A stretch of DNA of 64,000 bases. Source: Dimorphilus gyrociliatus. Taxonomy: Eukaryota > Animalia > Annelida. The stretch spans positions 3,286,001-3,350,000 of the forward strand of contig CAJFCJ010000001.1 in the NCBI GenBank assembly GCA_904063045.1. The letters are read 5' to 3'. The notes beneath the pieces were generated by a model. That model did no database searches. It was given only the letters and a program-made list of their open reading frames with translations, and had not been told where the DNA came from. This document shows positions 26,264 to 63,623 of this stretch, piece by piece; position 1 is the first letter of the stretch; every line of letters starts with the position of its first letter. The position numbers were made by a program, and so were the translations under genes.

Positions 26264-26279
26264 AGTAGACATTATTATA

Positions 26280-27148: not shown

Positions 27149-30100
27149 ATGGAGAAAAATCACTTCATTTTTCTCGTTCTCTTGGCAGTGATTTATAACT
27201 ATAGTAAAATATCTTAATATTCATTTTTCACATAGAAATCTATAACTAATTTATTAAAATTATTTAAGACGTTGACTCGGCTACATCTCCAACCAATGAG
27301 ATTTATAATTGTGAAGAAAGACAGAGCGGAGATAAGAGCGTTTTTTGTGGAGTTTGTAAGACTGGTTCAATTCTTACAAAGGATAAAAAAAATTGCCTTA
27401 GTAATATTTTATTAATTTTCTACAACCAATCAAATTGAATAATGATAATTTTTCATTTGTTAGAATGTCCAGATAACTGTGATGAGTCGTACTGTTTAGA
27501 AAGACAATCTTGGACTGATATCAATGACGCAACGAATTGTACAAGTTGTAAGAGTAGCTATTTCCTTAAAGGAGAACTTTGTGAAAGTATACTTTCTAGA
27601 AATGAACTAATTAATTAATTAATTAATTAAAATTATTGTTTATAGAATGTCCCATTGGATGTAAAAATTGTACTACTGAAAATGAATGTGACGAATGTTT
27701 ATCCAATTACGTATTCAAGTCGCCTGTTAAAGATTGTACGGCTTGTCCATCTAATTGTTTAAGGTGTTCTTGGAATATCATAGATAAGAAATCTGAATGC
27801 GAATTTTGTTCTGAAGGATACGTTTTAGATGATAAGAAAACTTGTACTTGTAAGTAATTGAAACGTTTCTTGAAATTTTATTGCTATAAACGATTATGTT
27901 TCAGCGTGTGGCAGCAATTGTCTATCTTGCAGTTTTATTCAAGGAAAAGGCATCGAATGTAATAGATGTCATCCAAATATGTATATAACAACTGGTACCT
28001 CGGTAGAGTGTAAATTATGCTCATCAGCATTACCTGGTTGTAAAAGATGTTCAAACGAGGATACTTGTATTGAGTGTTTATCTTCGAGCTATTCACTCAG
28101 TTCAAGCGGAAAGTGCGAATCTTGTTCACCTATTCATGCAGCATGTATAAGCTGTGACGTTACCAGCGGCTCAAAGAAATGTTCAAAATGTTCAAGTGGT
28201 TATTACGTTAAGGATGATTCTTGTGCATCTTGTTCGAGGAATTGTGATACCTGCAGAGAAACAAACGACAAACTTGAATGTACCAAATGTAAGACAGACT
28301 ATACTGTTATAAAACAAAATAATTGTGATAGATGCCCTGACAATTGTTTGGATTGTGGAATTTCTAACGATAAGCTAGTCTGTAAATCGAACATGTGTTC
28401 TCCAGGATATACATTAAATGACGATAAATCATGTGCTAAATGTCCCAATAATTGCAAAGCTTGTACATGGAGTACTTCGAATTCAAGAACTGAATGTAAT
28501 GGAAACAGTGCTAGTCACTCTTGTGTTGAAAATGAGAATGGGAAATCATGGACAAGAAAGAGTGATGGAACGTGTGTTGGTAAGTTGATAACTCTTAAGT
28601 ATTCTTGATTTATATATAACTATTTTTCCTTACAGCTTGCCCAGATAAATGTTTCAAATGCTACTTTACTGACGAAACTCTGCAACCAATTTGCTATGCT
28701 TCTAAATGTTCTATTAAACACGGTTTTGATGATGCTACAGGTACTTGTTTTGCTTGCCCATCAGGATGTGATTATTGTAAGAGGACACTGAAAGGTGATA
28801 TTTGTCAAAAGTGTAGTGAAAAACATGCACCAAAGTACACAAGTGATAATACAATTGAGTCTTGCGAATGGTGTTCTATTTGGGATTGTGATTATTGTGA
28901 AGTCCTTGACGGTTCTGTCAAATGTAGAAGATCTCCTTGTGCATCGAAAGAAGTTAGTTCCGCTAACAAAAAATTTTCATTTACTAATAATGATTGCTCT
29001 GGTAACTGTCCAATTGATTCGAGCTGCGATTCAGGGAAGATTAATGATGAAAATGAAATTTGCTATTGTCGATCGTGTCCAGCAGGATCGGCTGTAATCC
29101 TAGTTGGTTCAAATGCTGGAGTGTGTAAAAGCTGTGGTCCCGATTGCGAAAAATGCGAATTGAATAGTGTCAAAAACGACGTCGAATGCAAAACTTGTAA
29201 AGGAGTTAAACAATGGCTTACTGTTGAAGTGGGCCCTCAGGCTGTATCAGTTAAGGGATGCTTTGGTATCTTTCTCACATTTTTATGGTTTTTATAAGCT
29301 ATAGTAACCTAATTCTCTTTCATTATAGATTGTTCGGCAGCTCAGCCTCATTGTAAACAATTGGAGTACGCTGGAAATCCACCTATTTGCAGGTGTAAAA
29401 TGAACAATTGCATAGGAGATCAAACTCAAAATTCACCAACAAAAAGACATACTGTTATTCAAGAAACTTCAGGCAGTCAGAGATGCAGAGGTAAAGGAAT
29501 ATCTCCTTATTCATAAATATGATATTTAACAATTAGATTTTCAGGTTGTTCGGATTTGTTTCCCAAAGCTTTGTGGTGTAGAGGAAATTATGCTAGCGAA
29601 TCATTAGAAAGCTGCCAGCAGGGATATCAAAAGCTTTCTGGTACCAATACTTGTAAAGGTATAGTTTTTTTTCATTGCAAATATACAGCACTTTAGATTA
29701 TATAGTCTTTTATATTTCTTAGCTTATCCTGACAATTGCGCAAACTGGGGTGATACACAATCTACTTCTGATGTCAGTAGAGTTGACTGCTTGAAATGCA
29801 TTCCTGGATATTATCTTTTTAACGGCAATTGTATATCTTGTTCTAGCGTTTTCGAGAACTGTCTTGAATGTGCTAGAGAGCCATCCAGTGTAGTATGCAC
29901 TGAGTGCTCTTCAGGGTCTGGTTTTAATTGTAAAACTCCTTGTACATCGTCTCCTATCCCGGATTGTGGTACAATGTGGGCTACTACAAATGCCAATACC
30001 TGTAAATGTAAAACTTGCTCTGGTAGTTCTAATCCCCAGAATCTTCACATCGTTGCTCCATATGTTGCATCTGTCCTCGGAAGTTCCTGTGGAGGAAAAA

Positions 30101-33100
30101 CAATGACAATATCTGGTTGTAACAAATATGGCAGTGGATCTCCAGATATTTGTGTCAAATGTAACGTCGATCATGCTCTATCTCCTTTAAGAGATGCTTG
30201 CTTAGGTACAAGCTTTTTTAAATTAGGATGTAAAGAAGGATATTCATTCGCTTTCGATCCAAGTAGTGTTCTTTGCAGAGTTCCTAAAGACGGTTTTATG
30301 GAGCATTCTGTCAAAAATAATCCTCCCATAAAGGTTGCTGATGATAATCTGGCAAATTCTGGGAGCGGTTGTACAGGCTACCTTTCGATAAATTCTGATA
30401 GCAGTTCAGATGGGAGATGTGGTGGATGTGAAACTGGGAAAGTTATTGATGTTTTATCGGAGAAAAAATATACATGTACAAGTTGTTCTACAACAGGCTT
30501 CCCTAACTGTGAATTTGCAGTAGCATATAAAGGATCTTGTCGATGTGGCAGGTGTAAAACGAGTAATTCTATTGCTTATGTTATGAGACCGGATCAGAGA
30601 GGCTGCGTTGAATGTTTAGGTATTGTTGATTGCTCCGTTTACACCCTACGTTTACTTGATGGCGAATTGAAATGTGCTTGTGCTAGTTGCGGTAATAACA
30701 AACTTGTAAATAGCGACGGTTTCAGCTGTATTGACTGCAGCAGTAAGCTTTGCTCACCTGGAGAGGTAAAAGCTGTTGATTCAAAGTGTGAATGTTCTTG
30801 TAATGACCAACAATTGATGAAAAATAACACTAATGGATGCGTTTCGTGTGGTACAAATTCGGATTTACCAAATTGCAAAAGTGGTCATTACAAATTACTT
30901 GAAAATGATCAATGTGGATGCTCTGAATGCATTTCTGGGCATGTCTTGAAGTCTGATCAATCAGCATGTTTAAGTTGTACAAAAACTACCCCTGGAAATA
31001 TAATACCCAACTGCAAGGTTTGCTTGGAAAGTACGACAGTATCTGGAACAATAGATAAATGTATTTCATGTGATGATGGATATGCTTTAAATCCTGCAGA
31101 TGGAAATTTAGCAGCGACTTGTCTGAGTTGCCAATCTGGATGTCAAAATTGTACTGTTGATAGAAGCAAGTCTCCTCCAACCACAGAGAGGAAATGTACA
31201 GCATGTAAAACAGGCTATACTTTAAATACTCAAGGAACTTGCATTAGGTGTCCCACAGAACCGAAAACTTGTAGCGAGTGTCGAATCGATCCTAAAGATA
31301 GTACTAATACTTTGTGTACACAGTTTGGTTGTGGATCGAATGCCTTAAGAGATTCAGATTTTAAATGTGAATCCTGTAAGATTAGCAACTGTGCAAAATG
31401 CGTCAAAGATGTTAACAACGTTTTCAAATGTCTCGATTGTAATGAAAAATTCTTTATGGATAAAGATGGAACGTGTAAACAATGTATTAGTGGCTGTGAT
31501 TTTTGCGTGAATGGTGAAACGTGTATTCCGAGTGGTTGTATAGAAGGATTCATTAGACATAGAACAGATGGAACTTGCCAGAAATGCACAGGTGATGGTG
31601 TTTCTAGATGCATTTATAAAGATACAACAACCGATGTATTAGTACCAATCATATGTAAAGAAGGTTTTAGATTAAATACACAGCCAACAATCAACGTTTG
31701 TGAAGGCAAGTAGACAAAATAAAATTCATTCAATTGAATTCAATTAATATTTTATACTTTTTAATTTTAGCTTGCAGTGAAAATTGTAAGAAATGTGAAA
31801 TAGCTGGAAAGGATAAATGTGATACAGATGGATGTAAAACTGGATTTTTTTTTGATATCTCTGATCAACTGTGCTACGAAAATAATCCTGAATGCTTAAT
31901 TTCTACTAGGATAAACGGCAAGATTGTTTGCTCATCGTGCAATGAAACAACTTCAGTTTTAGTTGATAATGAATGCAAACCGTGTCCGAATGAATGTAGC
32001 GGTTGTACATCAAATAATAATCAATTTACGTGTTCTTCTTGCAAGGGCGGCTATTATAAAAGAGACGACGGAGTTTGCCTTGAATGCCCTTCTGGTTGTT
32101 CTTCTTGTGCAATAGTTGAGGGAAGAGTGGCTTGTGAAGATTGCTTACAAGGATACAGTCTTCAAGGTGAAAGTTGTACTCAATGTGGAATCAGCGAATG
32201 TGATAAATGTAAGTTCGATTCGGGAAATTTAGCCTCCTGTGAGAAATGCTCTAGCAAATTCTATTTAAATACTGATGATTGCGGATCTTGTCCAGAATTT
32301 TGTGCAGAATGTACCTTTAATCAAAAGTATACCTGTACTAAATGCTATGATAAATATGCAAAGAGTTTGGATGGAAAGTGCATTAAATGTTCATCAAATT
32401 GCGCAATTTGTACTGCAAAACCTGATAAATCGACTAAATGTATAAAATGCATATCAAGTGAATTTTCTTTAGGACTCGATGGCGTATGTAGACCTTGCAA
32501 TAAGGCCATATTCAAAAATTGCTCAATCTGTGAATCTGAAAATGGGAAAGACAGGCCAAAATGTTTATCATGCGCAAAAGGATATACATTAAAAGACGAT
32601 GAATCGGGATGCGTTAAATGTTCCATTTCAGGATGTAATGACTGCAGTCATGGAAGAGTTTGTTTAAAATGTAAGAGAGGAACCTATTTGCATAATTACG
32701 ATAGAGAATGCGCTCGTAAGTAATTAATTTTAACGTTTGAAGAAGTGAAAAGATCAGGTCATAATGTTTTTTAATATTTTTACAGGTAAATGTTACGAAT
32801 GTCAAGGAAATGAAGAAGAGTGCGGGAAAGATATTTCCAAAATACAAAATATTACAAATACAGTAAAACTCATCGATTGCGGTATTGGAGACTGTTGGGT
32901 ACATAGAAGGGAAGAGGGAGACGTAGTTACATTTGAGAGATCTTGTTCGAAGCAAACATGTTCTTCAGGAACAGTTGAAGTCAATTGTAAGTCTGTGGAG
33001 GGAAAGAAAGAATGTTCAAGATGTTGTAAGGGACCAAAATGTAATACGTGGTTCTTGGACGGCTCTGCTGGATCAAATAAACTCAGTATTTCATATGTTC

Positions 33101-33138
33101 TATGTTTAATAAGTATTATACTTTTATCAATTAGTTAA
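27149..33138 (+). CDS. Copy A: intact 1791-aa GPI-type surface protein, CXXC/furin-like repeats plus C-terminal Ly6/uPAR domain (exons 27149-27203, 27269-27400, 27464-27586, 27646-27849, 27905-28579, 28636-29265, 29329-29490, 29545-29658, 29723-31705, 31771-32715, 32786-33138)
   Basis: Signal peptide MEKNHFIFLVLLAVIYNY, then dozens of CxxC-x(2-3)-CxxC units. The last exon is KCYEC...CCKGPKCN (Ly6/uPAR CCxxxxCN), then GSAG and a hydrophobic tail with no cytoplasmic region. Exons sum to 5376 nt with all introns in phase 1. Confidence 0.88.
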
Positions 33139-33659: not shown

Positions 33660-34800
33660 ATTCTTATAAGTGGTGGTTGTGCTACTGGATTTACTCTAGA
33701 TTTTTCTCCAACAAAATATGATTGTACATCATGTACTGCTGCTGGACTAGATCATTGCACTTTTGCTGTATCTTCGGGAGATACATGTATGTGTGGAAGA
33801 TGTACTGCTGATGTAGCAGGAAAAGTATATCATAAACATCCTACACTACCAGGATGCACACAAAATGATGAAATTCCCAATTGTTCTTCTCACACATTGA
33901 AACTTAAAAATGGAGCTTATGTAGTAGCATGGACAGCCTGTTCAGGTGTAAATGTTTTGGCTGAAGATGGATTGTCATGTGTGGCTTGCTCAAAAACTTG
34001 TACTGGAGGTTCAAAAGTAGTTGCTGCTGGTGCATCAACATGTACATGTGATTGTGCTGCTGTTGGTTTCGTAAATACTGCTGGAGATGATTGTATTACT
34101 TGTGCAACAGCTGGAAAAGCAGGATGTTCAGAGGTACACCTAAATGGAGCAACATGGGAGTGCAAAACATGCAATGTCAAACATGTTCTGTACCATCTGG
34201 TGGAAGTGGTCTTGTTTGTTTAACATGTTCAAATAAGTTTTATTTGAATAGTGATGATTGTGGCCAATGTCCGAAGTTCTGTAAAGAATGTTCATACAAT
34301 CAAAAATACGAATGTATAAAGTGTTATGAGAGATATGCAAAGGCATCAAATGGAACATGTGTACCATGTCCATCAAATTGTGAGACATGTATAGCCAATG
34401 CAGATAAGACAACAAGATGTACAAAATGCATATCAAATCATTTTCTTTAAAAACTGATGGAACTTGTGTACCATGTTCAGAAGCTGCTTTTGCAAATTGT
34501 GCAACTGGTGGACCAAACTGTAATTGTAATGAAATGAAAGTCAGTAATGATGCTATTTGAAAGGTTGATTTTTTATTTATGATAAAAATTATGATGCGTC
34601 TCTCAATACAAGCTGATGACTTTTGATGATCGTTGCCAATAGTTTTTGTTATATTATTAATATTGAAAAATGATTGATTTGCTCTTTCCAGAAGAATATT
34701 TTTTTATTATTGGGTCACATAAAGAAATATTGTATATAGTATAATAAATTTCTATGGTGTTCAAGAGAGAAATGTTTTAGTATTTCATTAATTTGAGAGG
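33660..34800 (+). pseudogene. Internally deleted remnant of a copy-D-like gene (part of exon 9 fused to part of exon 10, fused to 3' flank)
   Basis: 33660-34176 matches ~60890-61400, 34173-34518 matches ~62675-63020, and 34520-34800 matches the non-coding flank ~63705-63985. Confidence 0.88.
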
Positions 34801-34879
34801 AGACAATCAATAGATGCTGTAATTTCTCCATCATGAAAATTTTAGTAACAAAATTGGTATCTGTCAAACAACATTGGGA

Positions 34880-35578: not shown

Positions 35579-35910
35579 TCAAGTTTTGTTGATTAATATT
35601 GAGAATATAAATGAGAAATATATATATAAACTGATTACAGTTTGTCTCGCTGAACCTGCTTTACCATTTAATACCCAAGTATTACATTTTTCTCCTCTAC
35701 AATATTTTACACACTCTCTCTTTCCTTCTATCATTTTACAATTTTCATTCTCATTTGACGTGGTACAAGTTTCATTGGAACATCCTCTTGTAAATATTAC
35801 TGTTTTTGAAACTTCTGTTCTATAAGCCCAACAATCACCAATACCACAATCAATTATTTTCACTTTGTCTGTCACATTCTTTATATCAGACACATCATTT
35901 CCACAATCTT
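35579..35910 (-). pseudogene. Inverted orphan last exon (Ly6/uPAR domain plus hydrophobic tail) from a paralog not otherwise present in the window
   Basis: DCGNDVSDIKNVTDKVKIIDCGIGDCWAYRTEV...CVKYCRGEKCNTWVLNGKAG + hydrophobic tail*. It lacks the first KCxxC and its tail differs from A, B and D. Confidence 0.8.
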
Positions 35911-36009
35911 AAGCAAGTTTGAATATGAATTCAAAATATCAAGACATTTCAGTGCATGTTTGATGCAGAGAAATGTTTTACTTCTTGTGTTTTTCAATAC
36001 ATTAGCATT

Positions 36010-36420
36010 TTTTTTTCAGGGAAATGTTTTAAGTGTATAGGAAATCAAGCAGACTGTGGAAATGATATTTCTTGAATGAAGAATTCAACTGATAAAGTGA
36101 AAGTTATTGATTGTGGAATTGATGATTCCTGGTCTTGTGTCTGCAACTCTATTGATTGTATTGTGCATTGTTGTATTTTTTGCTCAGATGAGCCTTGTAT
36201 AAAGTTGTAAAGGAATTTATATTGTGTTAAAACTTGTGTCTTTTTTTCATATCTAAGCCGCGTATACTTTGAATTACTGATTAAAAATATATTTAATATC
36301 AATAATAACATCATCTACAACCTTCATGCCTAAAAGTTGATGTAAAATGAGCCACAGAAGACTGTTTGATATTTTAGGAGCCTTAGCTGATTTTGAAAAA
36401 AAAAATGCAAATTGTGCCAT
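36010..36420 (+). pseudogene. Deleted copy of the copy-B last exon plus 3' flank
   Basis: Near-identical to 43012-43605 apart from a ~180-bp internal deletion and an in-frame TGA. Confidence 0.88.
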
Positions 36421-37195
36421 TCGAAAGACTTGATGTAGAGCATGATATTGTATAATGTAAGGGTCATGATAGCAATCTGCTATCAAAGTTTGTTTGAAAG
36501 TTAGGTGTAAAGGACAAAAATTTCAAAAAAATATCAATATATAGAAGAAAGGAGTGCAATTTTCATAGCTATCTCATTTCCAACAATGACTAGACAAGCT
36601 TTAAATATTTCTTATAATAGTAAAAAAGATAAGACTTGAAGAAAGACATATCATTTGAAAAAGACAATCCTTGCCCACCAATCCCAGTAAATTAGAAAAG
36701 CAGTAGAAACAGAATGAGTACAAATTGGTTATAGACTATCCATTTTCTAGTATATATAAACATGATTAAAAGACAAATTATCTTATTATTTATTATCTAC
36801 TTTAAAAATTATAAGCTACTCTTAATCCTTTTGTAAATACAATATATTTGAATACTGTTTATTATTCTAATCTTTGAAAGAAATAGTTAGTTCAATCAAA
36901 CGCTGATTACAATCATAAGTTCAATACCCAAAAAAATTAATATTCTGATCCTAATACAAGACAAGTAAGAAGTATTTAAAAACCACAAAACAAATAATTT
37001 CATGCAAATATTAGTAGTTTAAAATGCAATGAACCAAGATATTATCCTAGAGATAGACCAAAAACAACGACTTAATATAAAAGGATATAAATCAATTGAA
37101 GGACATAATATTTTAGGAGAAAGACACTTCAGTTGAAAACCTAAAATAACTTTTCAGTAATTTCAATACACCCCAGGAAACTAACTAAGATAGGA

Positions 37196-40100
37196 ATGAG
37201 AACAATAGTTATCCTCTTTTTAGCAATTATTCTTCAGGGTAAATGTCTGTTCAATATCACATTCATAAAAAAAGTCACGTTTGCTTTAATCTTACTTTAG
37301 AATCAAGAGGTGCAACTGTTCCAACAACTAATGTTTACAACTGCGATGCTGGACAGACTGGACTTCGACGTGTAACTTGTGGTATGTGTTCTTCGGGAAG
37401 AATACCAACTAAAGATAAGTTAAAATGTTTACGTAAGTCTGTTGTTTTTTCATTTTGTCAATATTTCAAAGATATTGTGTTCTAGTCATTTATTGTTTAA
37501 ATAGAATGTCCAAATTGGTGTATAAAAGGCGAGTGCGTTGAGAAATCTTCTTGGACAAATGAAAATGACGCAACTGATTGTAAAGCTTGCACTGAACACT
37601 ACTATCTTAAAGGGACAGTTTGCGAAGGTAAAGTGATTTTTAAGACAATGAAATAAGTTTTATACAGTATACAGCATTACAGCAAATTGTAGTACTTGAA
37701 AAATTCTATATACTGTATTACAGAATGTTCAATTGGGTGCAAAAATTGTACTGATGCAACTATTTGCAACGCTTGTTATTCAAATTATGTACTGAAAGAT
37801 ACGCCTAAGGAATGTGCCTCTTGCCCATCGAATTGTGTTGCCTGCAATTGGAATACCGCAAACGCAGCAGCCGAATGTTCGACATGTAAAGATGAGTTTG
37901 TTGTCAACGATAAAAAAACTTGTACAGGTCAGTTTCTTTTTTCTTTGACACAATAGATACAGTATATCTTACGGCTTTTCTCATTATAAACATGACGCAT
38001 TTTCAGCTTGTGGATCGTACTGTAAGTCATGCTCATACTCCAAAGATAACGGTGTTAGTTGTAGTAGCTGCTATTCTAATGCCTACAAAGAAACAAATAG
38101 TGCTGTTTCCACTTGCAAATTATGCTCAACAGCAATCTCTGGCTGTAAAAGGTGTACAAATAAAGATACTTGTACTGAGTGCTTATCAAAAGCATATTCT
38201 ATTACATCTTCAAATAAATGTGAAGCGTGTAGCACAGTTTCTGCATCGTGCATAGAATGTGATGCAAGTAGTGGAGTTAACAAATGTAAAAAATGCATGA
38301 GTGGTTATTACTTAAACTCTGGCTCCTGTTCTCTATGTCCACGAAATTGTGATACTTGCGAACAAAGGGACAATATTATTAAATGCACAAAGTGTAAAGT
38401 AGATTATACAATTGTTGATGTAAAGAGCTGTGATAGATGTCCAGATAATTGTCTCCAGTGCCATGTAGTAGTGGACAAATTGGTTTGTAGAACAGGAGGA
38501 TGTGCATCTAAATATGCATTAAATTCGAATAATCTATGTAGTAAATGTCCAGACAATTGCAATGCATGCACCTGGAACTCGGCAAATTCCAGAACTGAAT
38601 GTAACGGAAATGGCGCAAGTCATTCTTGCGTTGAAAATTTTGGAGGAAGATCTTGGGGGAGAAAAAATGATGGAACCTGTGTTTGTAAGTTTGTTTCTAT
38701 CGTTGTTGTCTTCTTTTTTAATGGACATTAAATTTTCATTATGTAATTTTATTAATATAAAATTTTGCAGCTTGCCCAAGTAATTGTCTAAAATGCTACT
38801 TTAAAATTACTTCATCTTCTACTCCAGTATGTTATGCTTCTAAATGTGCTAAAGGATTCGGTTTTGATGATACTACTGGAACATGTTTTCCATGTCAAAC
38901 AGGGTGTGATTATTGTAAAAAAGCATCGACTAGTTCCATATGTCAAAAATGTAGTGAAAAATATGCACCTAAATTCGTTACTGGAACATCAAATATAGAA
39001 ACGTGTATTTCATGTTCCTCATTAAGCAATTGCGATCATTGTGAAGTTATTGGAAATGATGTAAAATGTAGAAGATCACCGTGTGCATCAAAGTCGACTG
39101 GAACAAATAAGAAATTTTCATTTTCAAGTAGTACTTGTGCTACTGCATGTCCAGCAGATAGTTCTTGCCCGTCGGCTGATGTTCATGATGAGAATGAAAT
39201 TTGTTACTGTAGGAACTGTCCATCAGGATCAGTAACAGTTACAGCAGGAGCGAATGCAGGTGTTTGTAAAAGTTGCGGAATCGACTGCGAGGAATGTGTA
39301 TTGTCTGCTAATAAAGAAGATGTTGAGTGTAGGACATGTAAAGGATCGAAACAATGGGTTACAGTGGAAACAGGCTCTCCCGCTGCTATTGTAAGAGGAT
39401 GTTATGGTATGTATTATTAAATCAATGCTAATATTCATTAATAAGTAATTAATCTATATATGAGTTCTTTAATTTAATGCAAAATAAAAATAATAATTTT
39501 ATTTAAAGACTGTTCAATTGCTTCTCCGATGTGTAAACTATTTGAATACACCGGTAGTCCTGCTATTTGCAAATGTAAAACTGGTGAATGCATAGGTGAT
39601 ATATCTCATACCTCACCAAATGATAGACTGACTGTCTTACAATCTCCAACCAATCACCAAGAGTGCAAAGGTTAGTAATAATATAATAATCATCTCAATT
39701 GATTTAAAATAAATGTGTTTAAAGCTTGTCATGAACATGTATCAAACGCTTTATGGTGCGGTGGAACATATGCAATGCCTACTCTTGCCACATGTAAATT
39801 TGGTTATATGAGAGATTGTGGTGGAACGGCTTGCTTGAGTATGTTGAAAAGACTTACTTTATAAATCCATTCTGTTCATATATTTATATTTTATTTTATG
39901 TTATAATACAGAAATAGTGCCAAATTGTGCCTTCGCTTTCCCCATACCTTCCCCAGTTTCTCCTTCAATAGCCACTTGCACACAATGTGCAACCAATGCT
40001 TACTATGATCCAACAACTGGCTTGTGTCCAATATGTAATGCAGACCCTACAAGAGCTTCTTGCACGTCATGTATTTATGATTCAGGAAATGTGCTGTGTA

Positions 40101-50450: not shown

Positions 50451-50578
50451 GCAAGTTATAAATTCAATTAACTTGCCTAAGGTGTGGCCAAGCTATAATT
50501 CAATTAACCTTCACAAATGTTGAATCTTGTAACATCTTGTCAATAAAGATAAATATTTCAGCAACTATAAAGTGATGA

Positions 50579-50773
50579 TTGGATATCAGAGGCAAACCTC
50601 AAAGTATAAAAATCCTCATTATTTTCATTCTAAGTGTACCTATCCGGACCCAAGGATCTGGGAAGGTAACCTGGAAACAACCTCAACTGGAGCCATCTAT
50701 CTACTTCTCAACATTGGAAAGCAGTTTGATAATTTGGCAACGTGCTATTACGAACTATCTTCTCTGCTATTGA
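50579..50773 (+). mobile_element. Possible decayed RTE-type LINE fragment
   Basis: SIKILIIFILSVPI..GS...TW.Q.QLE...IIWQRAITNYLL resembles KI+...LSVLLYGSETW...LE...I.WQD+ITN of RTE RT tails. Confidence 0.45.
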
Positions 50774-53700
50774 ACTCTCACATTGCTACTTGCCTAAGTA
50801 TTCTTATTTTAAATAAACCGTTTTAATTTAAACATTTGTTTAAAGGTTCGAGTAGAACCAGTATGTTGTAACTTACAAACGCATAAATTTACCAAACAAG
50901 AGCAGTACAATACAAATAACATAATTGGAGATTGTGTTCCTGCTGTATCTCCTTCCCCTACCCCAATAATTAATTGTTTACAACAATTTAATAGTCCAGC
51001 TGGAGGTGGTACCGTCCATTGCGAAAGATGTGTTGATGGCAAGGAAGTGGTAGGAAACACAACATATGCTTCTGTAGCTGTGTGCAAAAATAATTGCTTA
51101 TTTGGAGGAGCCGCTGCTGGCTGTTTAATAGCTGATGCAGGCAAAATGATGGAAGATGAAACAATAGACACAATTATTACAGTTGATTTTGCAGCTTTAG
51201 CATCAGGCAACTGCAAATGATATTTAGCGGGAGTGGCAGCACCTATCAAGCAAATGAGGCCTGATGTGGTGGTTGTAATGCTGGATTTTCTCTAGATTAT
51301 TCTCCAACAAAATATGACTGTATATCATGCACTGTTGCTGAATTAGATCATAGAACAGAATGAACTTGCATTCCATGTACTGATGTACTGGAAGCAGAGT
51401 TTCAAGATGTGCATATGAGACAGCAACAAGTGACAACCATACCAAAGATTTGCAAAACAGGATATAAATTAAACATTGCTGTTTCACCAGAAGCATGTGA
51501 AAGTAAGAAGATAATTATAAATGTTACATTTTTGTTTCCAGATTATTAAATATGACTTATATATTTTCAGGGTGTGATCCCAATTGTAAAAGCTGCGAAA
51601 CAAATTGAAAAGACAAGTGTTACTCAGGAAAATGTAATTCTGATTATTTCCTTGATTCTAGTGATCAAAGATGTTACAACAATAAAGCTGGTTGTCTTGC
51701 TTCAACTAGAAGTAATGGAAAGATCACTTGTTCATCATGTAATACAGCAACTTCGGTACTTTCCAATGGTGAATGTAAAACATGTCCTACTGGCTGTAGT
51801 GGATGTTCCTTTGATGCTGCAACAAGCAAATTTACTTGTTCAACATGTATAGCACAATATTACAAAACATCTGATAATTTGTGTTTGCCTTGTCCAACTG
51901 GTTGTAGTGTCTATTCCCTCAATGGCTCAGCAGTCGAATGTACAAGTTGTCTTGCAACATATGGCTTTAAAGGAACTTCAGGTGAGTTGTGTGGTATTGA
52001 AGAATGTCAAATGTGTTCTGTTCCACGCGGTGGAAGGGGTCTTGTTTGTTTAACTTGTTCAAATAAGTTTTATTTGAATAGTGATGATTCAGGTCAATGT
52101 CCGAAATTCTGTAAAGAATGTTCATATAATCAAAAATATGAATGTACAGAGTGTTATGATAGATATGCGAAGGCATCAGATGGAACATGTGTACCATGTC
52201 CATCAAATTGTGAAACATGTACAGCCAATGCAGATAAGACAACAAGATGTACAAAATGCATATCAAAGTCATTTTCTTTAAAAACTGATGGAACTTGTGT
52301 CCCATGTTCAGAAGCTGCTTTTGCAAATTGTGCGACTTGTGGACCAACTCCATCAGGTGGAAAAGCAAAATGTGATATGCAGGAATATTTGCAGCATGTT
52401 TCATTATTGTCAATTCTTTTAGTTTTTAGGCTAGAATTACAAGCAGCAAGTGCTTGAAAAACTGACAGCTATCACTGTAACACTTTATAAATTAGATGTA
52501 TGCTCTTTAGTATTCTTACTGAAGAGCATGAACTATACTTTTATATTCTAATAGAAAAGAAGTGAAAATGTTTATTACTTTTTTCGTTTACTCCTTTTTT
52601 TAAATCTTGTATTTCAAGTTATTTTTGTGAATTTTTGGATGAATGGCATTTGATTTCATTTTCTATGTTTAAAAATTATGAGTGCAATAGAGACTTAAAA
52701 GAGATAACTTATTAGTATTGTTTGAATTTTAATGTTAAGTTTAGAAACTAGAGGTCGGTACTAGAAATAGTAATATCACAAGTTAGTTTGGTATATTTTT
52801 TAATGCTATAACAGCTGAACTTTTCTTTTATTTTTACAAAAGGATTATTCATTATAACTTTTTTATGGTTTTCGCAAAAAACATTAAGAAATTGAATTCA
52901 TTGAAAAATTCCTCTCTAAATTATCATATTCAAGCAAATTTTCTACTGATTTCAGTATGATTCAACATTTGCAGTTGCAGTATATTTCTGTTTTAACTTG
53001 CAAAAAATTTGTAGGTGTCGCTTATAGATCTTATTATAGAGCACGAGTTTCTTTCTATTAATAAATGAAAAGGATTACTAGCATTGTGTCCGCCTGAACT
53101 TGTTATATTTGTTTGATCACGTTCTCTTATTAATGTTATAATCTCAAACTAATTGTAACATACTTCCTAAGCGTTTCATAAACTGTATATTTTAATTAAT
53201 TCCTTGATTCTATCCCTACTGACCTTGGTGTAATGCAGTATTTATTGTATTTAATATATTTATAGTACATATATAAAAAATACATTAGTAGAAAGATTTT
53301 TAACCAATCAGACTTACAAATTGATGATAAAACTTCAAATTAACATTTCATGAATAGACATCAAGATAGAGGCAGACAAAGGGTGACAACAAAGATTTCG
53401 TAAAATTTCATAACATTTTCAACTTGCACAAGAAAGGGTTAAGCAAGATTTTCTTTTATTTATAACGTTGCTAAAATAGCTATTAAAATTATACATTGTA
53501 TTAAAGAATTATTATTAATTATTTACAAAAAAACCCAGCTAAGCGTACTTTGATTGAATAATGGAGAAAAGGGAAAATTCTAAAAATCCCTTTTTGTGGT
53601 TTATTCTTTTAGATTATTAGTACTACTTTGCTCAAGATTGAATGTAAAACATTCAAACATGTCCTTTTTTCTAAACATCTTATATTTTAAATAATTGTCT

Positions 53701-54094
53701 GATGCAGTAAACCTCTAATATAAGATTAATTGTTCCACTAAAAAACCTATTGAATTTGATCTATTAAGGACAATGCTTCACTAATCACTTTTCCTAACTA
53801 CTTTCATTAAATTGGCATTCATTGTCAGACTACAATCCTTTTAATTTGTTTATATTAATACCATTAAATTTGTTTTAACATACTAAGGAAAAAAACATAT
53901 GGCGGTACGACATTAAGTATTTGCAAGTGCTATCAAGCAGAGAGACTAAACAACAATATAGAATGGGACTAACGTATGGACCTTAGTGCAGAAACGGACA
54001 AAGACAGTTATTTTTCTGTTATTGGTAACGAATTAATCTGACTAAATAAACTTGTTTTTATTTGTTTATATTGTTACTAAGGTGATGAGAAAAA

Positions 54095-54455
54095 AAAAGT
54101 AGTGTTAGGGAAAACTTGTAATTATTTAAAAGATCAGTTTGCCGCCAAGATATATAAAATTTATTTATGTAAAAAAACATAGAATTGCTATGAAACTTTT
54201 GGATGTTTTAATCTCTGCAAAACACGAAATTGAAGAGAAAATCTTGATGACAAAGACAGATACATTCAAGTTCATTCATTAAAGATACAAAATGATTACA
54301 AAATGAAGACAACTAATTACAATAAAGAGATTAACTTGATAAGAAATGATAACATTTCTATTTAGAATTTTTATAACTAAAACTTGACAATAGATGTTAT
54401 AACTTTACAATCAGTAAATACTGCTCTTTTGTATATTTTAAAGATAGTAATACTA
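54095..54455 (+). repeat. Direct repeat of the copy-D upstream block at ~56610-57015 (related block at ~46310-46550)
   Basis: Shared tgttagggaaaacttgtaat, aatctctgcaaa, aaaatcttgatgac.aagacagatacattc and gaagacaactaattacaataaagagattaacttgataagaaatgataacatttcta. Confidence 0.85.
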
Positions 54456-57400
54456 TTCAACGATATATATGGTATAAAGGTAATAGTTGACAAAATTTCC
54501 CTGGATAGTAGTAAATTTAGACATGCGACTTTTAAACTAATACTTTCTTATACTATAGGAATAGCTGTAATTTTATAAGTGATAATTATACTCTACGAGA
54601 GTTTAATATTTTGTACATGATAAACATTATGATACCCTTATCGATACAAGACGCTGACTTGATTAAACTAATCAGTAGTTTTTATTTTATTACTTTTTGT
54701 TATTCTAACATGTTTAGTTTGCTTCGTAAAACATAATTGTTCTTTCTGCTTCTAATTCTCCAGACAACATGCTTTTTGAGCAAATATGAGGCTAAAAATT
54801 TTCAGAATATGCTTTGAATATCTTGTGTTGCAATTTCAATAACTTAAAAAGTAGGTGTAATATTTATCTTCACTTTTTTTAATTTTTAAACACTGAATAA
54901 ACATCCAAATTGTCAAACAAAGTTTTTACTTAAATTTCAATGTTTTCATATATAAAAACATATTTTCTTTAATTACTTAACATCAAAATAATATAAAATA
55001 TGAATAATAGATCATATGGCTAGAATATATAACTCTTATAATATTTAATTTCTTCGATATGATTTTAACGTTGAAAAGAGATTATGCTGGTATTTATTTG
55101 AATATGAATCGGGGGTAAATAATAACTCAGTTGTCAAAATATAAAAGAATATAACATTTGAAAAAGAATCTTTGGCCTATGGCAACGAAGTAAACTTGAT
55201 CATTTTCTTTAGAAGAAAATGACTTAAATAATAATTGATGTTATTATGACGATAAATTTCTTTTTAAATCTCAGCAAGAAAGACTAAAATGGATTTGCAA
55301 TTGGAGAGATCAACAGCAAAATTTTCACTGTAATTAGAGTTTTAGGATTTTTTATGACAAAGATGCATTTACCGCAATTAACATTAAGGAATTTTTTATG
55401 GTTATTATTAATGATCTCGGTGGGAAGTGCAGTATAACTTAGAAACAAGATGCCTATTTAAAAGCTTGAACTTTGAAGTGTCTAATAAAAAGAAGTATTT
55501 AACGTATAAAAGATATATTTACAAAAAACTGGCAAAATTTAAGATTCATTCGTTACCATAAACAAAAAAAAATACTGTCTCAGTATGATCCACAATTGGG
55601 ATAATCCTGTTCATTCTATTCTGTATTTTTGTTTAGCGAATCTCAAAATAAGTTTTGAACTCTTAAAAGTATTTCTACCTCCTAGCCCTAATAGAGCAGA
55701 AACACTCACGCATTACCATCCTTATGATCTTATATTTTAAATATTTATCATATTTAATCCTTTTTTTTAAATGATACTATTCAATATAAACTGTATTAAA
55801 AACTTATTTCACAAAGAAATTATTTAAACTGCAAATAAAATTCAATCTTTTACATTGAACAAAGGGAAATGGGTGTTAAAGATACTAAACTATTTATTTA
55901 AGATTAAAAATTAAGAACTAACGAGCTGAAAACATTTACTAGAATACAGACAGTTTATCCCAAAAGTTAACTAGTTGTCTTTTTCCAAAATTAGCTTTTT
56001 TCTATACACTGTTTATTTGCTACTTTAGCAACGTTGTAAATAAAAAAGACTTGCCTAATTTTCTAAATATTTTGCACTGACTTGGGAGGTTGAAATATCA
56101 GATATCGAATATATTATAGAGAGTACTAGTAAACGATTTAGCTTATAGTATATCTAAGTAGAGATAGTTGAATACCAAACTTATTACTAACACCACCACA
56201 TTATCTGAATCTATTAGGTGAAAAAGAAAACAGAGGTGGTAGGATAAGAGGGTGTGGGAAATTTGAACTGTTGATAAATTCCATTAGATAATGCGCCCAA
56301 ACAAACCTTCAGAAAAGGATCAACAGTCTTCAATGGTGAAACCTAAAAGGACAGCCTTCTTGAGCAAATAGTAACTATAAATGCTCAGTAGATCAAAAAT
56401 AAACAAACATTTTGAATAGATGTACAATTGAATGCATCATTTAATCTGCGATAATCTTCATTCAATTTTTGTAAATTACTCTTTCTTTAACAAAAATTAT
56501 AACAAGTTCTCTGCCGACAAAGGTTCAAATTTATTTAAAAAATGTAATATACGGTATACTATGTACATAGTTAATCTTATATACTTGGATGTGACTTCGG
56601 TGAAGAGAATAAAAAAGAATACTGTTAGGGAAAACTTGTAATCAGTTAAAACATGAATTTGATGCCAAGATATATAACACTATAATAAACACTTCAATTT
56701 TGCAGTTGTAAATATATATTTATGTAGAAAATCATAAAATTACTAAGACTTTAAAAATATTTGGTGTTTAATCTCTGCAAATTGCAAAAAATGAACACAA
56801 AGAAAAAATCTTGATGACTAAGACAGATACATTCTAGTTCATTCATTAAAGGTACAAAATGATGACAAAACGAAGACAACTAATTACAATAAAGAGATTA
56901 ACTTGATAAGAAATGATAACATTTCTATATAGAACTTTTATAACAAAAACTTAACAATAAATGTTATAACTTAACAATCAGTGCATACTGCTCTTTTGTA
57001 TATTTTAAAGGTATTTATACCATTCAACACTATACTGTATCTTTTAGTTGAAATAAACATAACACTTCTTACATTATTTAACTTGAAATATTACTCGAAA
57101 TATATTTGAATTCCGAAATTAAGACAATAAAATATGCTTTTATGGGAAACATTTGAGAACAAAGTATATGATTTATCATTTACCACACTTATCAATTCAC
57201 TCGCAATATATTAAATAACATAATAAATAAATTTCAATTAAACATTATTATAAGGAAATGATAACATTTTAAGTATTTGGCAGACAAAAATTAATTTGCA
57301 AATGTTATATTAATTTCTATTTTGACAACCAACATTTTATTTTCTCTATTCATATGGAAATTTCTAGCAACAATAATCTCTTTACAAAACTAAAATGGAA

Positions 57401-57576: not shown

Positions 57577-60500
57577 ATGAAGAACTTTGTCCTCATAGCA
57601 CTTTGTGCTGTGGTCATTCAATGTAAGTTAAAACAACATTCTTTTTATGAATAATCAATTTATATACTTTAAATATGATATCATTATTAAGTCTATGCGA
57701 AATCAAAACAGACTCACAAACGGCTACAGTACCAAGCAGTGATGTGTATAATTGTGAAACTGGACAAACAGGAACACGAACAACAACATGTGGAATGTGC
57801 TCCAGTGGAAGAATTCCTTCATCGAATCGACTTAAATGCTTCAGTAAGTAAACCAAAAAAACACAAAGACACAATATTAAAATGAAATATTTACAAAAAC
57901 AGAATGCCCAGACTTCTGTTCAAAAGGAAAATGTACACTGAAAACTGATGTATCAAATGAAAATGATGCAACTCTATGTTCACAGTGCATTGAACACTAT
58001 TTTCTAGACACTGGAAAATGCTCCGGTATTCTTATACTATTTCCTCTCTATTCATGTTACACTTTCAACCATTCATATTTTTACATTTAATCTTATTTAA
58101 GAATGCTCAACTGGATGCAGAAACTGTACAAGTGCAACATCATGTCTTGACTGTTACTCTAACTATGCTATGAATGATGCCACTAAGCTGTGCGTTCTTT
58201 GCCCATCCAACTGTGTTAAATGCACTTGGAATTCTGCCACTTCAAATGCTGATTGTGACACTTGTGCTGATAGATATGTCAAAAAAGACACCGGCTGCAC
58301 ATGTAAATATTCTCAAAGTATATTATACACCACACATTTATTAATAACATTATTTTCAGCTTGTCTATCCTACTGCAAATCTTGTACTTATAACAAAGAC
58401 ACTGGTGTCAGTTGTAGTTCTTGTGACACAAATGCATACAAGGAAATAACCAATAATATCAACACATGTAAATTATGCTCCACTGCAATTTCTGGTTGTA
58501 ACAAGTGTTCTGACAAAGATACTTGTACTGAATGCATGTCTAAAGCCTATGCTTTAACAACATCAAACAAATGTGAAACATGTAGTTCCATTCATTCAGC
58601 ATGCACTGAATGTGATGCCAGCAGTGGCACAAACAAATGTAAGACCTGTAAAAGTGGCTATTATCTTAAGGATGATTCCTGTTCTGTCTGTCCAAGAAAC
58701 TGTGACACCTGTGAAGAAACAAATAGCATTGTCAAATGCACGAAATGTAAAGTTGACTACACAGTAGTTGATCTGAAGAGTTGTGATAGATGTCCAGATA
58801 ATTGTCTTGAATGTGAAGTTTCTGGTAGTAAACTGGTGTGTAAATCTGGCAGATGTGCATCAAAATATGCTCTAAACTCAGACAACTTGTGCTCAAAGTG
58901 TCCTGATAATTGTAAGGCATGTTCCTGGAGTTCATCAAATTCTAGAACAGAATGTAGTGGAACAGATGCGAGTCATTCATGTGTTGAAAATGAAGGTGGA
59001 AAATCATGGGGAAGAAAAAGTGATGGAAAATGTATAGGTTAGTCAAATTACTTTATCAACAGTTTTCTATGTAATAGATATTCCATGAGATGTAATGAAT
59101 AACTTTGTATATACAGCTTGTCCTGGAAATTGTTTAAAATGTTATTTCAAATCTTCTTCTGCGTCTTCACCAATTTGTTACGCTTCAAAATGTCAAAATG
59201 GATTTGCTTTTGATGATGATACTGGAAATTGCGTTTCTTGTCCTTCTGGATGTGACTACTGTAAAAAGAGAGGTTCTACTATAACATGCTTAAAGTGCAG
59301 TGCAAAATATGCACCTAAATATAATGCAAATAGTGGAGCCATTGATTCTTGTATGTCATGTACAATTTCCAACTGCGACTATTGTGAAGTGATTGGTGAC
59401 AAAGTGGAATGTTTAAGATCTCCTTGTGCCTCTAAAGCAACCAATTCAAATAACAAAAAGTTTTCATTTTCAAGTAAAACTTGTGCTACAAGTTGTCCTA
59501 CTGATTCAATGTGTGCAACCAAAAAAGTTAATGATGAAAATGAAGCCTGTTTTTGTAGATCTTGTCCTGCAGGAAGTGCTGTAATTCTGGCAGGAGCAAA
59601 TGCCGGAGTGTGTAAATCTTGTGGAACAGATTGTGAAGACTGTGGACTATCAACTGACAAGATGGATGTTGAATGTAAGACATGTAAAGGTTCAAAGCAA
59701 TGGGTATCAATAGAAGTATCTAGTAATGTTGTAAAAGGATGTTATGGTATTTATAGCAAATGAATTATTTGTAGAAAAAACTACTACAACATTTTAAAAT
59801 ATTTGACAGACTGCACTGTTGCATCACCACAATGTAAAGTGCTACAACTTTCTGGAAGTACTTGTATATGCAAAGCAGGTGAATGTATGGGCGATATGAG
59901 TATTAGTGGTAAACACTCTGTTCTACAAGAAACTTCTGGAACACAAGGCTGTAAAGGTAATATATTTCCATAAATTAATTCATGGATATCCAAAATATTT
60001 TCATTTTATACAATCTATAGCTTGTGGTGAAGCAATCGCAAATGCTCTCTGGTGTGGAGGTACCCATGCTGCAGCAACACTTGCTAATTGCGAATATGGA
60101 TATATAGAGAAATCTCCTTCATCTGGCACATGCATACGTATAAATATTTCCTTTAATTGAAAACTGCTTTAGTAAGATATGTGTTTCCTTTTCTTAGCAA
60201 TTCCTACCGGCTGTAAGACATATACAGATGTTGCAACTGGGTCACCAGAACATGCAACATGTACTGATTGCGCAAAAGGATATGTGGTTGATACAGCTTC
60301 TTGTACACCATGTCCTCCTGGTTGTTCTGATTGTTCTGCTGTATCTGGTCAACCAACAATATGTACAGCTTGTACAGATCCTACGAAAAATGGTATTGAC
60401 TGTCTAACACCAGTAGCTACCTGTACCTCTCCAGTGCCTCATTGTGATAAAAAATGGGCATCAGTTGCTCACCCAGCAACTGATGGAAATTGTAAATGTA

Positions 60501-63500
60501 TAAGATGTAGTAATACATTTGCAGTTGACACACCTGTGATACATACAAATAATTTAATAGGAGACTGTGCTGCTGGTGTACCCGCTTCTCCTACTCAATT
60601 AACTGATTGTGAACAACAATATAATGAACCAACACCTGCTCTCCATTGCGTAAGATGTGCTAATAATAAAGTACTACAAGGAAATGCATGTGTAGCAGCA
60701 GTAACTGACTGCAAAGACAATTACTCATATTTTTCATCGACTCCTAAATGCCTTATTGCTGCTGCGGGCAAAATGATGGATGCTGGATCAGACACAACAG
60801 TCATTACAGTTGATCCTACAGCACTAGCATCAGGAAATTGCAAAGGTTATATTGCATCAGCGGCATCACCTGCTCCAGCAACTAGTGGCCGATGTGGTGG
60901 GTGTGATACTGGATTTACTCTAGATTTTTCTCCAACTAAATATGATTGTGTAGCATGTACTGCTGCTGGATTGGATCATTGTACATTTGCTGTATCTTCA
61001 GGAGGTACATGTATGTGTGGAAGATGTACTGCTGATGGATCAGGAAAAGTATACCATAAACATCCTACATTAACAGGATGTGTACAAAATAATGAAATTA
61101 CCAATTGTGCTACTCACACATTGAAACTTAAAAATGGAGCTTATGTAGTAGCATGTGCTGCCTGTTCAGGTGCAAATGTTTTGGCTGCAGATGGATTGTC
61201 ATGTGTGGCCTGCTCAAAAACTTGTACTGGAGGAACAAAAGTAGTTGCTGCTGGTGCATCAACATGTACATGTGATTGTTCTGCTGTTGGTTTTGTAAAT
61301 AGTAATGGAGATGATTGCATTGCTTGTGTAATAGCTGGAAAAACAGGATGTTCAGAGGTACAACTAAATGGGGCATCATGTGAATGCAAAACATGCAATG
61401 CCAATTTTGTTATGAAAGCAGATAAATCAGAATGTGTTGCTTGTAACACTGGTCCTGGTGGTGCAACTTCCAACTGTAAAAATTGTAACTTAGCATCTTC
61501 TCCAGTTAATCAAGTATCAGCTTGCTCTGATTGTGACAGTAGATATGCATTACACACATCTTCAACACCTGGAACTAGTCCATCATGTATGGCATGTGGT
61601 ACAGGATGTACAACCTGTACAGTAGATACATCTGGAGTTTCTGCTACAACTGATAACAAATGTACAGTTTGTCAATCTGGTTATGCACTCAATAATGTAG
61701 GACTGTGTATTCAGTGTCCTACATCACCACAGGCCTGTTCGGAATGCAGAATTGATCCTGATGATCAAACAAGAACACTATGTCTATCATTTGGATGTGG
61801 AGCTGCTGCTCTAAGAGATAGTGATTTCACTTGCGATACATGCGCCTCTCTTACTGGTTGTGACATTTGTGTTAAACAAATTGGTGATACTCTGAAATGT
61901 TTGAAATGCAATTCTGGATATTATATGGATAGTAATAGTGTATGTCAGACATGTGTATCTGGATGTGATTTCTGTGTAGATGGAACAACTTGTATCCCCA
62001 ATGGTTGTAAGGACGGATTTATCAGACATAGAACAGAAGGAACTTGCACACCATGTACGGGAAGTGGAGTTTCAAGATGTGCATACGAGACAGCAACTAG
62101 TGATACTCTCATACCAAAGATATGCAAAACAGGATATAAATTAAACACTGCTATTTCACCAGTAGCATGTGAAAGTATGAAGATCATTATAAACATTCCA
62201 TACTTGTTTTGAGATTGTTAAAAACGAATTTTATCTTTTCAGAGTGTGATCCTAATTGTAAAAGCTGCGAAACAAATGGAAAAGACAAGTGTGATTCAGG
62301 ACAATGTAATTCTGGTTATTTCTTTGATTCTAGTGATCAAAAGTGTTACAACAATAAAGCTGGTTGTCTTGCTTCAACTAGAAGTAATGGAAAGATCACT
62401 TGTTCATCATGTAATACAGCAACTTCGGTACTTTCCAATGGTGAATGTAAAACATGTCCTACTGGTTGTAGTGGATGTTCATTTGATGCTCAAACAAGCA
62501 AATTTACTTGTTCATCTTGTATAGCAAAATATTACAAAACATCTGATAATTTGTGTTTGCCTTGTCCAACTGGTTGCAGTGCTTGTTCTCTCAATGGAGC
62601 ATCAGTTGAATGTACAAGTTGTCTTGCAACATATGGTTTGAAAGGAACTGCGTGCGAATTATGTGGTATTGGAGAATGTCAAACATGTTCTGTTCCATCT
62701 GGTGGAAGTGGTTTGGTTTGTTTAACATGCTCAAATAAGTTTTATTTGAATAGTGATGATTGTGGTCAATGTCCGAAATTCTGTAAAGAATGTTCATATA
62801 ATCAAAAATATGAATGTACAAAGTGTTATGATAGATATGCAAAGGCATCAGATGGAACATGTGTACCGTGCCCATCAAACTGTGAAACATGTACAGCCAA
62901 TGCAGATAAGACAACAAGATGTACAAAATGCATATCAAAGTCATTTTCTTTAAAAACTGATGGAACTTGTGTACCATGTTCGGAAGCTGTTTTTGCTAAT
63001 TGTGCAACTTGTGGACCAACTCCTTCAGGTGGAAAAGCGAAATGTGATATGTGTAGTGGAGGATTTACTCTACAAGATGATAAACTAGCCTGTGTTTCAT
63101 GTTCAATTACGGGATGTGGAATGTGTGCACATGGTCGCATATGTTCGAAATGTAAATCAGGATTCTATTTACATAATTATGATAGAGAATGCGCAAGTTT
63201 GTTTTTTATTGATATAGTTTTTGTTGATTTTTGATATGTATCAGTAATGTATTGTTTTTTTTTTCAGGAAAATGTTTCGAATGTAAAGGAAATCAGGCAG
63301 ACTGTGGAAATGATATATCAAGTACCAAGAATTCTACTGATAAAGTGAAGGTAATTGATTGTGGAATTGGTGATTGTTGGGCCTATAGAACAGAAATTTC
63401 GGGAACAATAACATTTGCAAGAGGATGCTCAAATGAAACTTGCACATCCGCTAATGAAAATGAAAATTGTAAAACGGTAAATGGAAAGAAAGAATGTGTA

Positions 63501-63623
63501 CAGTGCTGTAGAGGAGAAAGATGTAATACTTGGGCATTGGATGGTAAAGCAGGCGTAGCAGGATTATTTGCAACATGTTTCATTATTGCTGTATCAAGTA
63601 TCCTTTCCATCTTAATCAATTGA
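57577..63623 (+). CDS. Copy D: intact 1786-aa GPI-type CXXC/furin-like + Ly6/uPAR surface protein (exons 57577-57622, 57712-57843, 57903-58025, 58102-58302, 58360-59037, 59117-59746, 59810-59956, 60021-60137, 60198-62174, 62243-63196, 63268-63623)
   Basis: Signal peptide MKNFVLIALCAVVIQ. All internal exons are multiples of 3 with phase-1 GT-AG introns (5361 nt total). Ends CCRGERCNTWALDGKAGVAGLFATCFIIAVSSILSILIN*. Confidence 0.9.

Follow-up and report, generated by a model that had tools for sequence, protein, structure and literature searches.

Ciliate immobilisation antigens and Entamoeba Igl are large, cysteine-periodic surface proteins held by a glycosylphosphatidylinositol (GPI) anchor, and the sea urchin SpTransformer, snail FREP, and Hydractinia Alr families are animal systems with known polymorphism, induction, or allorecognition phenotypes. 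Giardia's variant-specific surface proteins (VSPs) end in a transmembrane helix with a CRGKA tail and carry a GGCY motif (10.1101/2022.03.07.483299). CXXC-bearing VSP-like surface proteins also exist in an animal, the myxozoan Sphaerospora molnari (10.64898/2026.02.11.705288). Ly6/uPAR (LU) domains have been reported from animals only, and a 2026 survey of them in 387 invertebrate genomes lists annelid architectures that are LU-only or receptor kinases and names no CXXC-array fusion (PMC13719153). Here we describe such a fusion in the annelid Dimorphilus gyrociliatus. A stretch of 64,000 nucleotides (the window; positions 3,286,001 to 3,350,000 of contig CAJFCJ010000001.1) holds a tandem array of two intact genes (A and D), a frameshifted gene (B), a pseudogene (C), and five orphan relics, which encode or derive from giant CXXC-array proteins with a C-terminal LU domain and a GPI-type tail. 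The explanation that we prefer, and hold to be somewhat probable, is a birth-and-death family of anchored surface-coat rods whose architecture is missing from the 2026 survey.

Genes A (27149-33138) and D (57577-63623), both on the plus strand, each comprise 11 exons, whose splice sites were placed by hand from the sequence, and both frames run from end to end without an internal stop. A, the earliest-diverged copy (exons 27149-27203, 27269-27400, 27464-27586, 27646-27849, 27905-28579, 28636-29265, 29329-29490, 29545-29658, 29723-31705, 31771-32715, and 32786-33138), encodes 1791 residues with 247 cysteines and 92 CXXC motifs; D (exons 57577-57622, 57712-57843, 57903-58025, 58102-58302, 58360-59037, 59117-59746, 59810-59956, 60021-60137, 60198-62174, 62243-63196, and 63268-63623) encodes 1786 residues with 246 cysteines and 91 CXXC motifs. 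The window is AT-rich (25-40% GC) and its introns are short. Those of A and D are all of phase 1, measure 54-102 nt, and follow the GT-AG rule except for a single GC-AG intron, intron 9 of A, with its GC donor at 31706, where a GT four bases downstream would disrupt the frame. Gene B (37196-43385, plus strand) likewise has 11 exons and is broken by a single frameshift in exon 9 near 40460-40470, a net one-base shift within a short TA run, so that it reads 1803 residues with an X at the break. The gene structure agrees with that of a spliced relative: a public JGI contig of 5,602 nt (L014) carries an intron-free frame of 1789 residues that passes through all ten modelled exon junctions. With 62% identity to B and 57% to D, it looks like the spliced mRNA of a close family member rather than of A, B, or D themselves (the metagenome scan was run with a 3-row alignment).

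The predicted A, B, and D proteins share one layout, in which a signal peptide is followed by about 92 CXXC motifs and these by a 12-Cys LU domain and a GPI-type tail, with hydrophobic stretches confined to the termini and no internal membrane helix. Cysteine makes up 13.8% of the residues, and the count of 91-92 CXXC motifs exceeds that of every one of 1000 shuffles, which average 34 and reach 53 at most. The regular repeat unit has 6 cysteines per ~35 residues and is clearest close to both ends, such units spanning only ~27% of the protein; 242 of the 246 cysteines of D are invariant across five full-length members. Exon 11 encodes the LU domain and the tail (32786-33138 in A; 43021-43385 in B, whose LU domain is 96% identical to that of D; 63268-63623 in D), the LU domain being less than 6% of the ~1,790-residue protein. 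The AlphaFold2 model of D exon 11 is a three-finger domain (predicted local distance difference test score, pLDDT, 89.7), which VIA matches to CD177 (Z 8.8; root-mean-square deviation 2.3 over 76 aligned residues), GPIHBP1 (8.7), and TEX101 (8.2); the top 38 rows of the fold search are all three-finger folds, and unrelated folds score Z 3.4 or less. The 12 cysteines form a pattern that ends in CC-x4-CN, and in an alignment of 40 rows C36, C53, C67, C76, C79, and C85 are invariant, with C80 and N86 conserved in at least 90%. Pfam gives no match for D exon 11 and weak matches among the relatives (QVR in 4 of 40, UPAR_LY6_2 and CD59 in 2 of 40 each). The C-terminal tails, of 30-34 residues, consist of small residues followed by a hydrophobic run with no cytoplasmic part, which by sequence pattern and hydropathy is a GPI-type signal; the A, B, and D proteins are therefore predicted to be GPI-attached. 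Since the anchor lies at the C-terminus, the LU domain forms the base, close to the membrane, and the CXXC array faces outward.

The earlier note on this DNA had described a furin-like stalk with a terminal LU domain. Fold prediction bears out the LU domain and the CXXC array stands, but the former is a base at the anchor and not a tip, and the latter consists of 6-Cys units of ~35 residues with no Pfam furin-like match. The canonical furin-like repeat has 8 cysteines and is longer. The present proteins resemble furin-like cysteine-rich proteins of the PCSK5 and R-spondin type in having CXXC disulfide modules, with structural likeness to R-spondin and TNFR at Z below 3, but in addition to the different repeat unit they have no protease or TSP domain. 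With GPI-anchored Ly6/uPAR proteins (CD177, TEX101, GPIHBP1, C4.4A, and Quiver-like proteins) they share the three-finger fold, the CC-x4-CN end beside a GPI-type tail, and tandem clustering; unlike these, they have a single small LU domain beneath a CXXC array, and Pfam misses it in D. The signal peptide, the cysteine content (that of VSPs being 10-13% or more), the many CXXC motifs, and the conserved membrane-proximal end recall the Giardia VSPs. Database searches were run exon by exon, with the public full-length relatives P0058 and P0057 as stand-ins for the joined proteins. The Pfam scan of the exons returned sub-threshold VSP matches alone (20.9-21.9 bits in exon 10, under the cut-off of 31.4), and none was obtained for the full-length paralog P0058; two relatives from other organisms do exceed that cut-off. 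In contrast to the VSPs, the Dimorphilus proteins have no transmembrane helix with a CRGKA tail and no GGCY motif (0 occurrences), and they have introns and an LU domain. A sequence search of the PDB with exon 10 gave no match, and an ESM Atlas feature search gave leads at 0.90 or lower only, among them ciliate furin-like/VSP clusters that bear a weak resemblance (0.84-0.90). The ciliate antigens and Entamoeba Igl are similar in being large, cysteine-periodic surface proteins, here with a predicted GPI anchor, a likeness without demonstrated sequence homology. The Sphaerospora molnari proteins differ in being transmembrane, without a reported LU domain. Neither our literature searches nor the 387-genome survey (PMC13719153) yielded a description of the CXXC-array, LU, and GPI-tail architecture, in keeping with the earlier note, which knew of no such metazoan family. 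The architecture is new, while the kind of protein and the gene-family dynamics are known ones.

A search for the same architecture elsewhere, as the earlier note had proposed, found it both in Dimorphilus paralogs and in proteins of public contigs. The nearest named proteins are DgyrCDS842, DgyrCDS14787, and DgyrCDS14434 of D. gyrociliatus, protein identity between copies is 47-85%, and no fewer than four further scaffolds, named or sized, carry paralogs. DgyrCDS14434 has 11 exons as in D and is 77% identical to it. DgyrCDS14787 (L001:9678-13604) is a deleted D-like copy without exons 1-4 and 11 and with internal deletions; on its flanks are a thrombospondin/C1q gene and an LRR-caspase gene. 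In DgyrCDS9671, D residues ~520-1068 are missing and a Ser/Thr-rich spacer of ~115 residues takes their place; a neighbour bears a Thr-Pro-Thr repeat at the equivalent place. On the same locus, a family gene has its 5' half duplicated over 3.4 kb at 97% identity (L010:6977-10324 and L010:18754-22118), the first copy having the Ser/Thr spacer where the second runs into the Thr-Pro-Thr repeat. Also beside DgyrCDS9671, on scaffold CAJFCJ010000014.1, are intron-free genes that combine GMC oxidoreductase with AUDH (aldos-2-ulose dehydratase) domains or have DUF1963 (L010:1099-6741, with a 1400-codon minus-strand frame at about L010:1100-5300), which look like candidate horizontal transfers.

A profile search with exon 11 recovered 43 proteins among 1.84 billion representatives; those with a named source, all of this 12-Cys LU subtype, come from Dimorphilus, Ridgeia, Lamellibrachia, Branchiostoma, Styela, and Saccoglossus. 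Complete proteins with signal peptide, CXXC array, LU domain, and tail, of 406, 957, 964, 985, 2165, and 2177 residues, are found in transcript-like contigs of 38-54% GC; they have the membrane-proximal repeats and the LU domain in common with D, but not the core. The public samples behind the relatives are SRR28369173, SRR6255866, SRR3401642, SRR27841049, and SRR23372229, along with JGI contigs; SRR14460572 is a seawater metatranscriptome (PMC8830328). A contig of 34% GC (L011:1-6411; SRR23372229) encodes a further CXXC-LU-tail protein, which is more distant; its ~2,000 residues are spread over several frames, the sequence being either broken or full of errors. In amphioxus, the LU subtype and tail bear Thr/Ala-rich (mucin-like) or EGF N-termini. 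Because CXXC, Thr/Ala-rich, and EGF N-termini all occur on this LU subtype, the LU-plus-tail module is a general base for several kinds of N-terminal extension. A tree of the LU domains gave no resolved branching.

The variable core, to which the earlier note had drawn attention, starts with exon 9 (29723-30410 in A, the end being approximate; 60198-60855 in D; plus strand) and corresponds to residues ~692-910 of D. Over these ~220 residues the members are 26-61% identical, as against 40-99% in the flanks. In A, B, D, and E, 20 of the 23 core cysteines are kept, as are all 221 scored cysteines outside the core. Small beta-hairpin modules with disulfides are predicted for the core: in the model of D residues 693-1092 (pLDDT 73, pTM 0.42) short beta-hairpins follow one another in a string, the structure being short beta-strands throughout, with a weak resemblance to TNFR, R-spondin, and EGF modules. 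Fold searches with the core model found no match (best Foldseek E 0.039, best VIA Z 2.9, Atlas TM 0.44 or less), which does not by itself show that the modelled fold is new.

For D against DgyrCDS14434, a maximum-likelihood (ML) fit puts the ratio of non-synonymous to synonymous change (dN/dS, omega) at 0.59-0.64 for the core, significantly below 1, and at 0.16 for the remainder (2dL=131). Counting methods in three comparisons give 0.62-0.93 for the core and mostly 0.16-0.28 for the flanks; outside the core, functional copies show 0.1-0.25, and in two pseudogene comparisons omega is 0.6-1.0 directly downstream of the core. Synonymous difference in the core equals or somewhat exceeds that in the flanks, as in D versus C (0.41 vs 0.19-0.21). 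A plain M2a versus M1a comparison detects a class with omega above 1 (p=1.4e-4), a signal that drops to p=0.065 when multi-nucleotide changes are allowed and to p=0.37 when gap-adjacent codons are also dropped. The amino acids and loop lengths of the core change fast, and relaxed constraint and diversifying selection are indistinguishable with the present data. These rates bear directly on one alternative, in which the genes would form a germline-diversified recognition family, directed at microbes, self/non-self, or gametes, with the core as a binding region on the rod and with conversion homogenising the flanks. The rate contrast of 0.64 with 0.16, the plain M2a test, and the D-C synonymous excess all point that way, and so does the comparison of D with DgyrCDS842, which are 98-99% identical in the flanks (residues 168-603) and 61% in the core. 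The genome report also describes most of the expanded families as local duplicates implicated in immunity, the present family not being named in the available text (PMC7854359). Nevertheless, we judge this alternative possible but unlikely: the signal of positive selection fades under the controls, core omega lies below 1 in the ML fit, the paralog DgyrCDS9671 is entirely without the core, and with no cytoplasmic tail signalling would need a partner.

A broader proposal, that a possibly widespread, undescribed animal family sets a VSP-like CXXC rod with a selection-diversified centre on an LU base, as a variable recognition or evasion surface convergent with protist coats, seems to us a shade more doubtful still. 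With SpTransformer, the FREPs, and Alr the array has in common clustered paralogs, pseudogenes, exchange between copies, and a variable extracellular region; the domains are unrelated.

Exchange between copies has left its clearest mark on B. The synonymous difference between B and D (pS, the proportion of synonymous sites that differ) is 0.62-0.78 in exons 2-9, where it is saturated, and 0.30-0.34 in exons 10-11. Informative sites group D with E in the first part and are mixed after it, a break that 0 of 500 permutations reach; the best single break lies near residue 1121, and the step in identity near 1350. L014 is B-like in exon 9 and equidistant in exons 10-11. By this synonymous step, the permutation test, and the pattern of L014, B is a chimera with D-like exons 10-11: in the distant past, its membrane-proximal end was either replaced by sequence of the D lineage or homogenised with it (dS about 0.4). 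The exchange affects the conserved end and not the variable core. Apart from its frameshift, B is under purifying selection: its branch carries 35 synonymous and 8 non-synonymous changes, and all cysteines outside the core are kept. Since B shows no decay, the frameshift is either a very recent event or an assembly error. A cryptic intron that would remove it was also considered; 18 GT-AG pairs fit arithmetically, but the relatives are continuous there, and this candidate was rejected.

Pseudogene C (47285-52379, plus strand) is D-like and consists of exons 1-5, a transposon, a part of the core (50905-51348), a deletion junction near 51350, and most of exon 10. Its exon 1 donor at 47331 is dead, and it has frameshifts, stops, and two large deletions. 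The earlier note had counted four 11-exon paralogs, which holds for A and D, intact, and B, frameshifted, but not for C, which has lost exons 6-8 and 11, and with the latter the LU domain and tail; it keeps pieces of exon 9 and contains half of the core. The transposon is of the Tc1/mariner type (49225-50450, plus strand), with inverted repeats at 49225-49259 and 50418-50450 and a DDE transposase frame at 49482-50393. Directly after it lies a ~440-bp repeat (50479-50912), 83% identical copies of which are seen ~7 kb upstream of the L001 and L009 paralogs. Intron 3 of C holds a ~190-bp element (47753-47947) resembling a miniature inverted-repeat transposable element, with inverted ends of 11 bp and TAACCC repeats like those of telomeres, whose copies in L001, L009, and L010 are 71-90% identical.

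Five orphan relics accompany the genes, in line with the at least five fragments previously counted, one of them lying upstream of the start formerly given to the array. This one, f1 (26010-26270, plus strand), is B-like, with 76% identity to B, and comes from the part of exon 9 that encodes D residues 1163-1234. Relic f2 (33670-34796, plus strand) is D-like, an exon 9 piece fused by an internal deletion, whose junction links two similar internal repeats, to an exon 10 piece followed by a copy of the D 3' non-coding flank (34515-34796). An inverted exon 11 piece, f3 (35585-35909, minus strand), holds an LU domain and tail with 82% identity to B, D, and E, and f4 (36008-36422, plus strand) joins an exon 11 start with a stop to a copy of the B 3' end and flank (94%). 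Relic f5 (45177-45628, minus strand) is inverted and D-like; it corresponds to D residues 1124-1274, from exon 9, and has two stops and one frameshift. The full design, from which all of the loci had been said to derive, is carried by A, B, and D, each fragment being only a 100-850 bp piece of it. Further copies of the D 5' non-coding flank, 70-85% identical and one of them inverted, lie at 45002-47744, 54072-54467, and 55036-55209. Paralogs on other scaffolds are likewise flanked by fragments and transposons.

The earlier note had taken these fragments for silent cassettes that feed the expressed genes. Such programmed or cassette-fed variation, as in trypanosome VSG, Borrelia vls, and chicken immunoglobulin, in which silent fragments donate tracts or copies are expressed singly by turns, would accord with the interspersion of fragments among intact genes, with the past exchange between paralogs, and with one 122-bp identical tract between C and D; decayed donors do function in the VSG archive. 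We nonetheless consider it highly improbable. Silent donors over the variable region were not found, since the five orphans map to D residues 924-1093, 1124-1274, 1163-1234, 1498-1609, and 1670-1785, and none (0/5) overlaps the core (692-910). Nor were recent near-identical tracts, the relics being 76-94% identical to the nearest gene, with a longest identical tract of 50 bp among the orphans. The orphans lie in both orientations, and two of them include the 3' non-coding flank of D or B. They are also decaying: relic branches carry 62 synonymous and 63 non-synonymous changes as against 56 and 14 on the D branch (p=3e-5), omega is 0.28 on relic branches versus 0.07, indicating relaxed selection (p=3e-5), and 16 of 183 cysteines are lost, with stops and frameshifts present. 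The B-D exchange is old and at the conserved end, and no motif of at least 10 bp is common to three upstream regions. Relics of this kind are to be expected where duplicates have undergone deletion and decay. What does survive of that note's proposal, on sequence comparison, is a fast-turnover family, probably GPI-anchored, with a hypervariable centre and past exchange between paralogs.

A part of the array might instead be an artefact of assembly: the frameshift of B could be a mistake in the consensus, and the merging of haplotypes could have produced some of the fragments or chimeras. The assembly was made with PacBio P6-C4, Quiver, Pilon, and HaploMerger2 (PMC7854359), and the break in B, in its short TA run and with no decay beside it, would suit such an origin. 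On the other hand, the relics differ by 6-24% from every gene and carry stops and cysteine losses of their own; 30% of synonymous sites distinguish B from D even over the stretch where the two are similar, far more than alleles would show; and the spliced relative agrees with the gene structure. An artefact can account for the frameshift of B, with chances about equal either way, but not for the array, and as an explanation at large it is very improbable.

The birth-and-death family of surface-coat rods that we prefer shows purifying selection on functional copies beside decaying pseudogenes, and copies of differing age at several loci. Its genes would produce secreted, GPI-anchored surface proteins with the LU domain as a conserved base at the lipid anchor. 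The small beta-hairpin modules with their disulfides, ~1,650 residues in all, would form a long rod, probably protease-resistant, and, by rough estimate, tens of nm to about 100 nm in length. Such rods would be part of a cell-surface coat or glycocalyx, probably protective or adhesive. In the middle of the rod the cysteine skeleton would be fixed while exposed residues and loop lengths tolerate, or are mildly selected for, change. Ordinary germline events would enlarge and shrink the array: copies would be duplicated in tandem, similar flanks would undergo unequal exchange or conversion, repeats would mediate deletions, and transposons would insert. The fragments would be decaying by-products of this turnover. 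The mucin-like spacer that replaces the core in DgyrCDS9671 would favor a spacer or coat role. Several points weigh against this reading. A core dN/dS of 0.6-0.9, with intervals past 1, is high for a passive spacer with fixed cysteines, and the contrast between core and flanks of D and DgyrCDS842 is what a recognition segment would predict likewise. The structure model of the core is of moderate confidence (9 rows), and the GPI attachment and surface location of A, B, and D are themselves predictions.

In the rest of the window, a gene with ankyrin repeats and a hydrophobic end like that of a channel, on visual inspection TRPA-like (945-6154, plus strand), a Pur-alpha gene with a PurA match (6772-10916, minus strand), and a DUF229 gene (23104-25015, plus strand) are neighbours of the array. 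A 197-codon frame at 20881-21471 (plus strand) has one CxxC motif and two hydrophobic stretches and is without a Pfam match. Non-coding repeats of the window recur on other D. gyrociliatus scaffolds.

More generally, these findings add to the Ly6/uPAR family a domain architecture that the 387-genome survey does not list (PMC13719153), an omission probably due to the failure of Pfam to detect this LU subtype and to the splitting of such genes by gene callers. They predict, from sequence, that an animal makes giant CXXC surface proteins in the style of protists, and that many 6-kb copies are maintained in a genome that is among the most compact of annelids (73.8 Mb; PMC7854359). The claim of cassette-based diversification is without support here. 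The fixed cysteine skeleton set against a fast-changing centre offers a testable target, one that may prove to be a coat or a recognition device.

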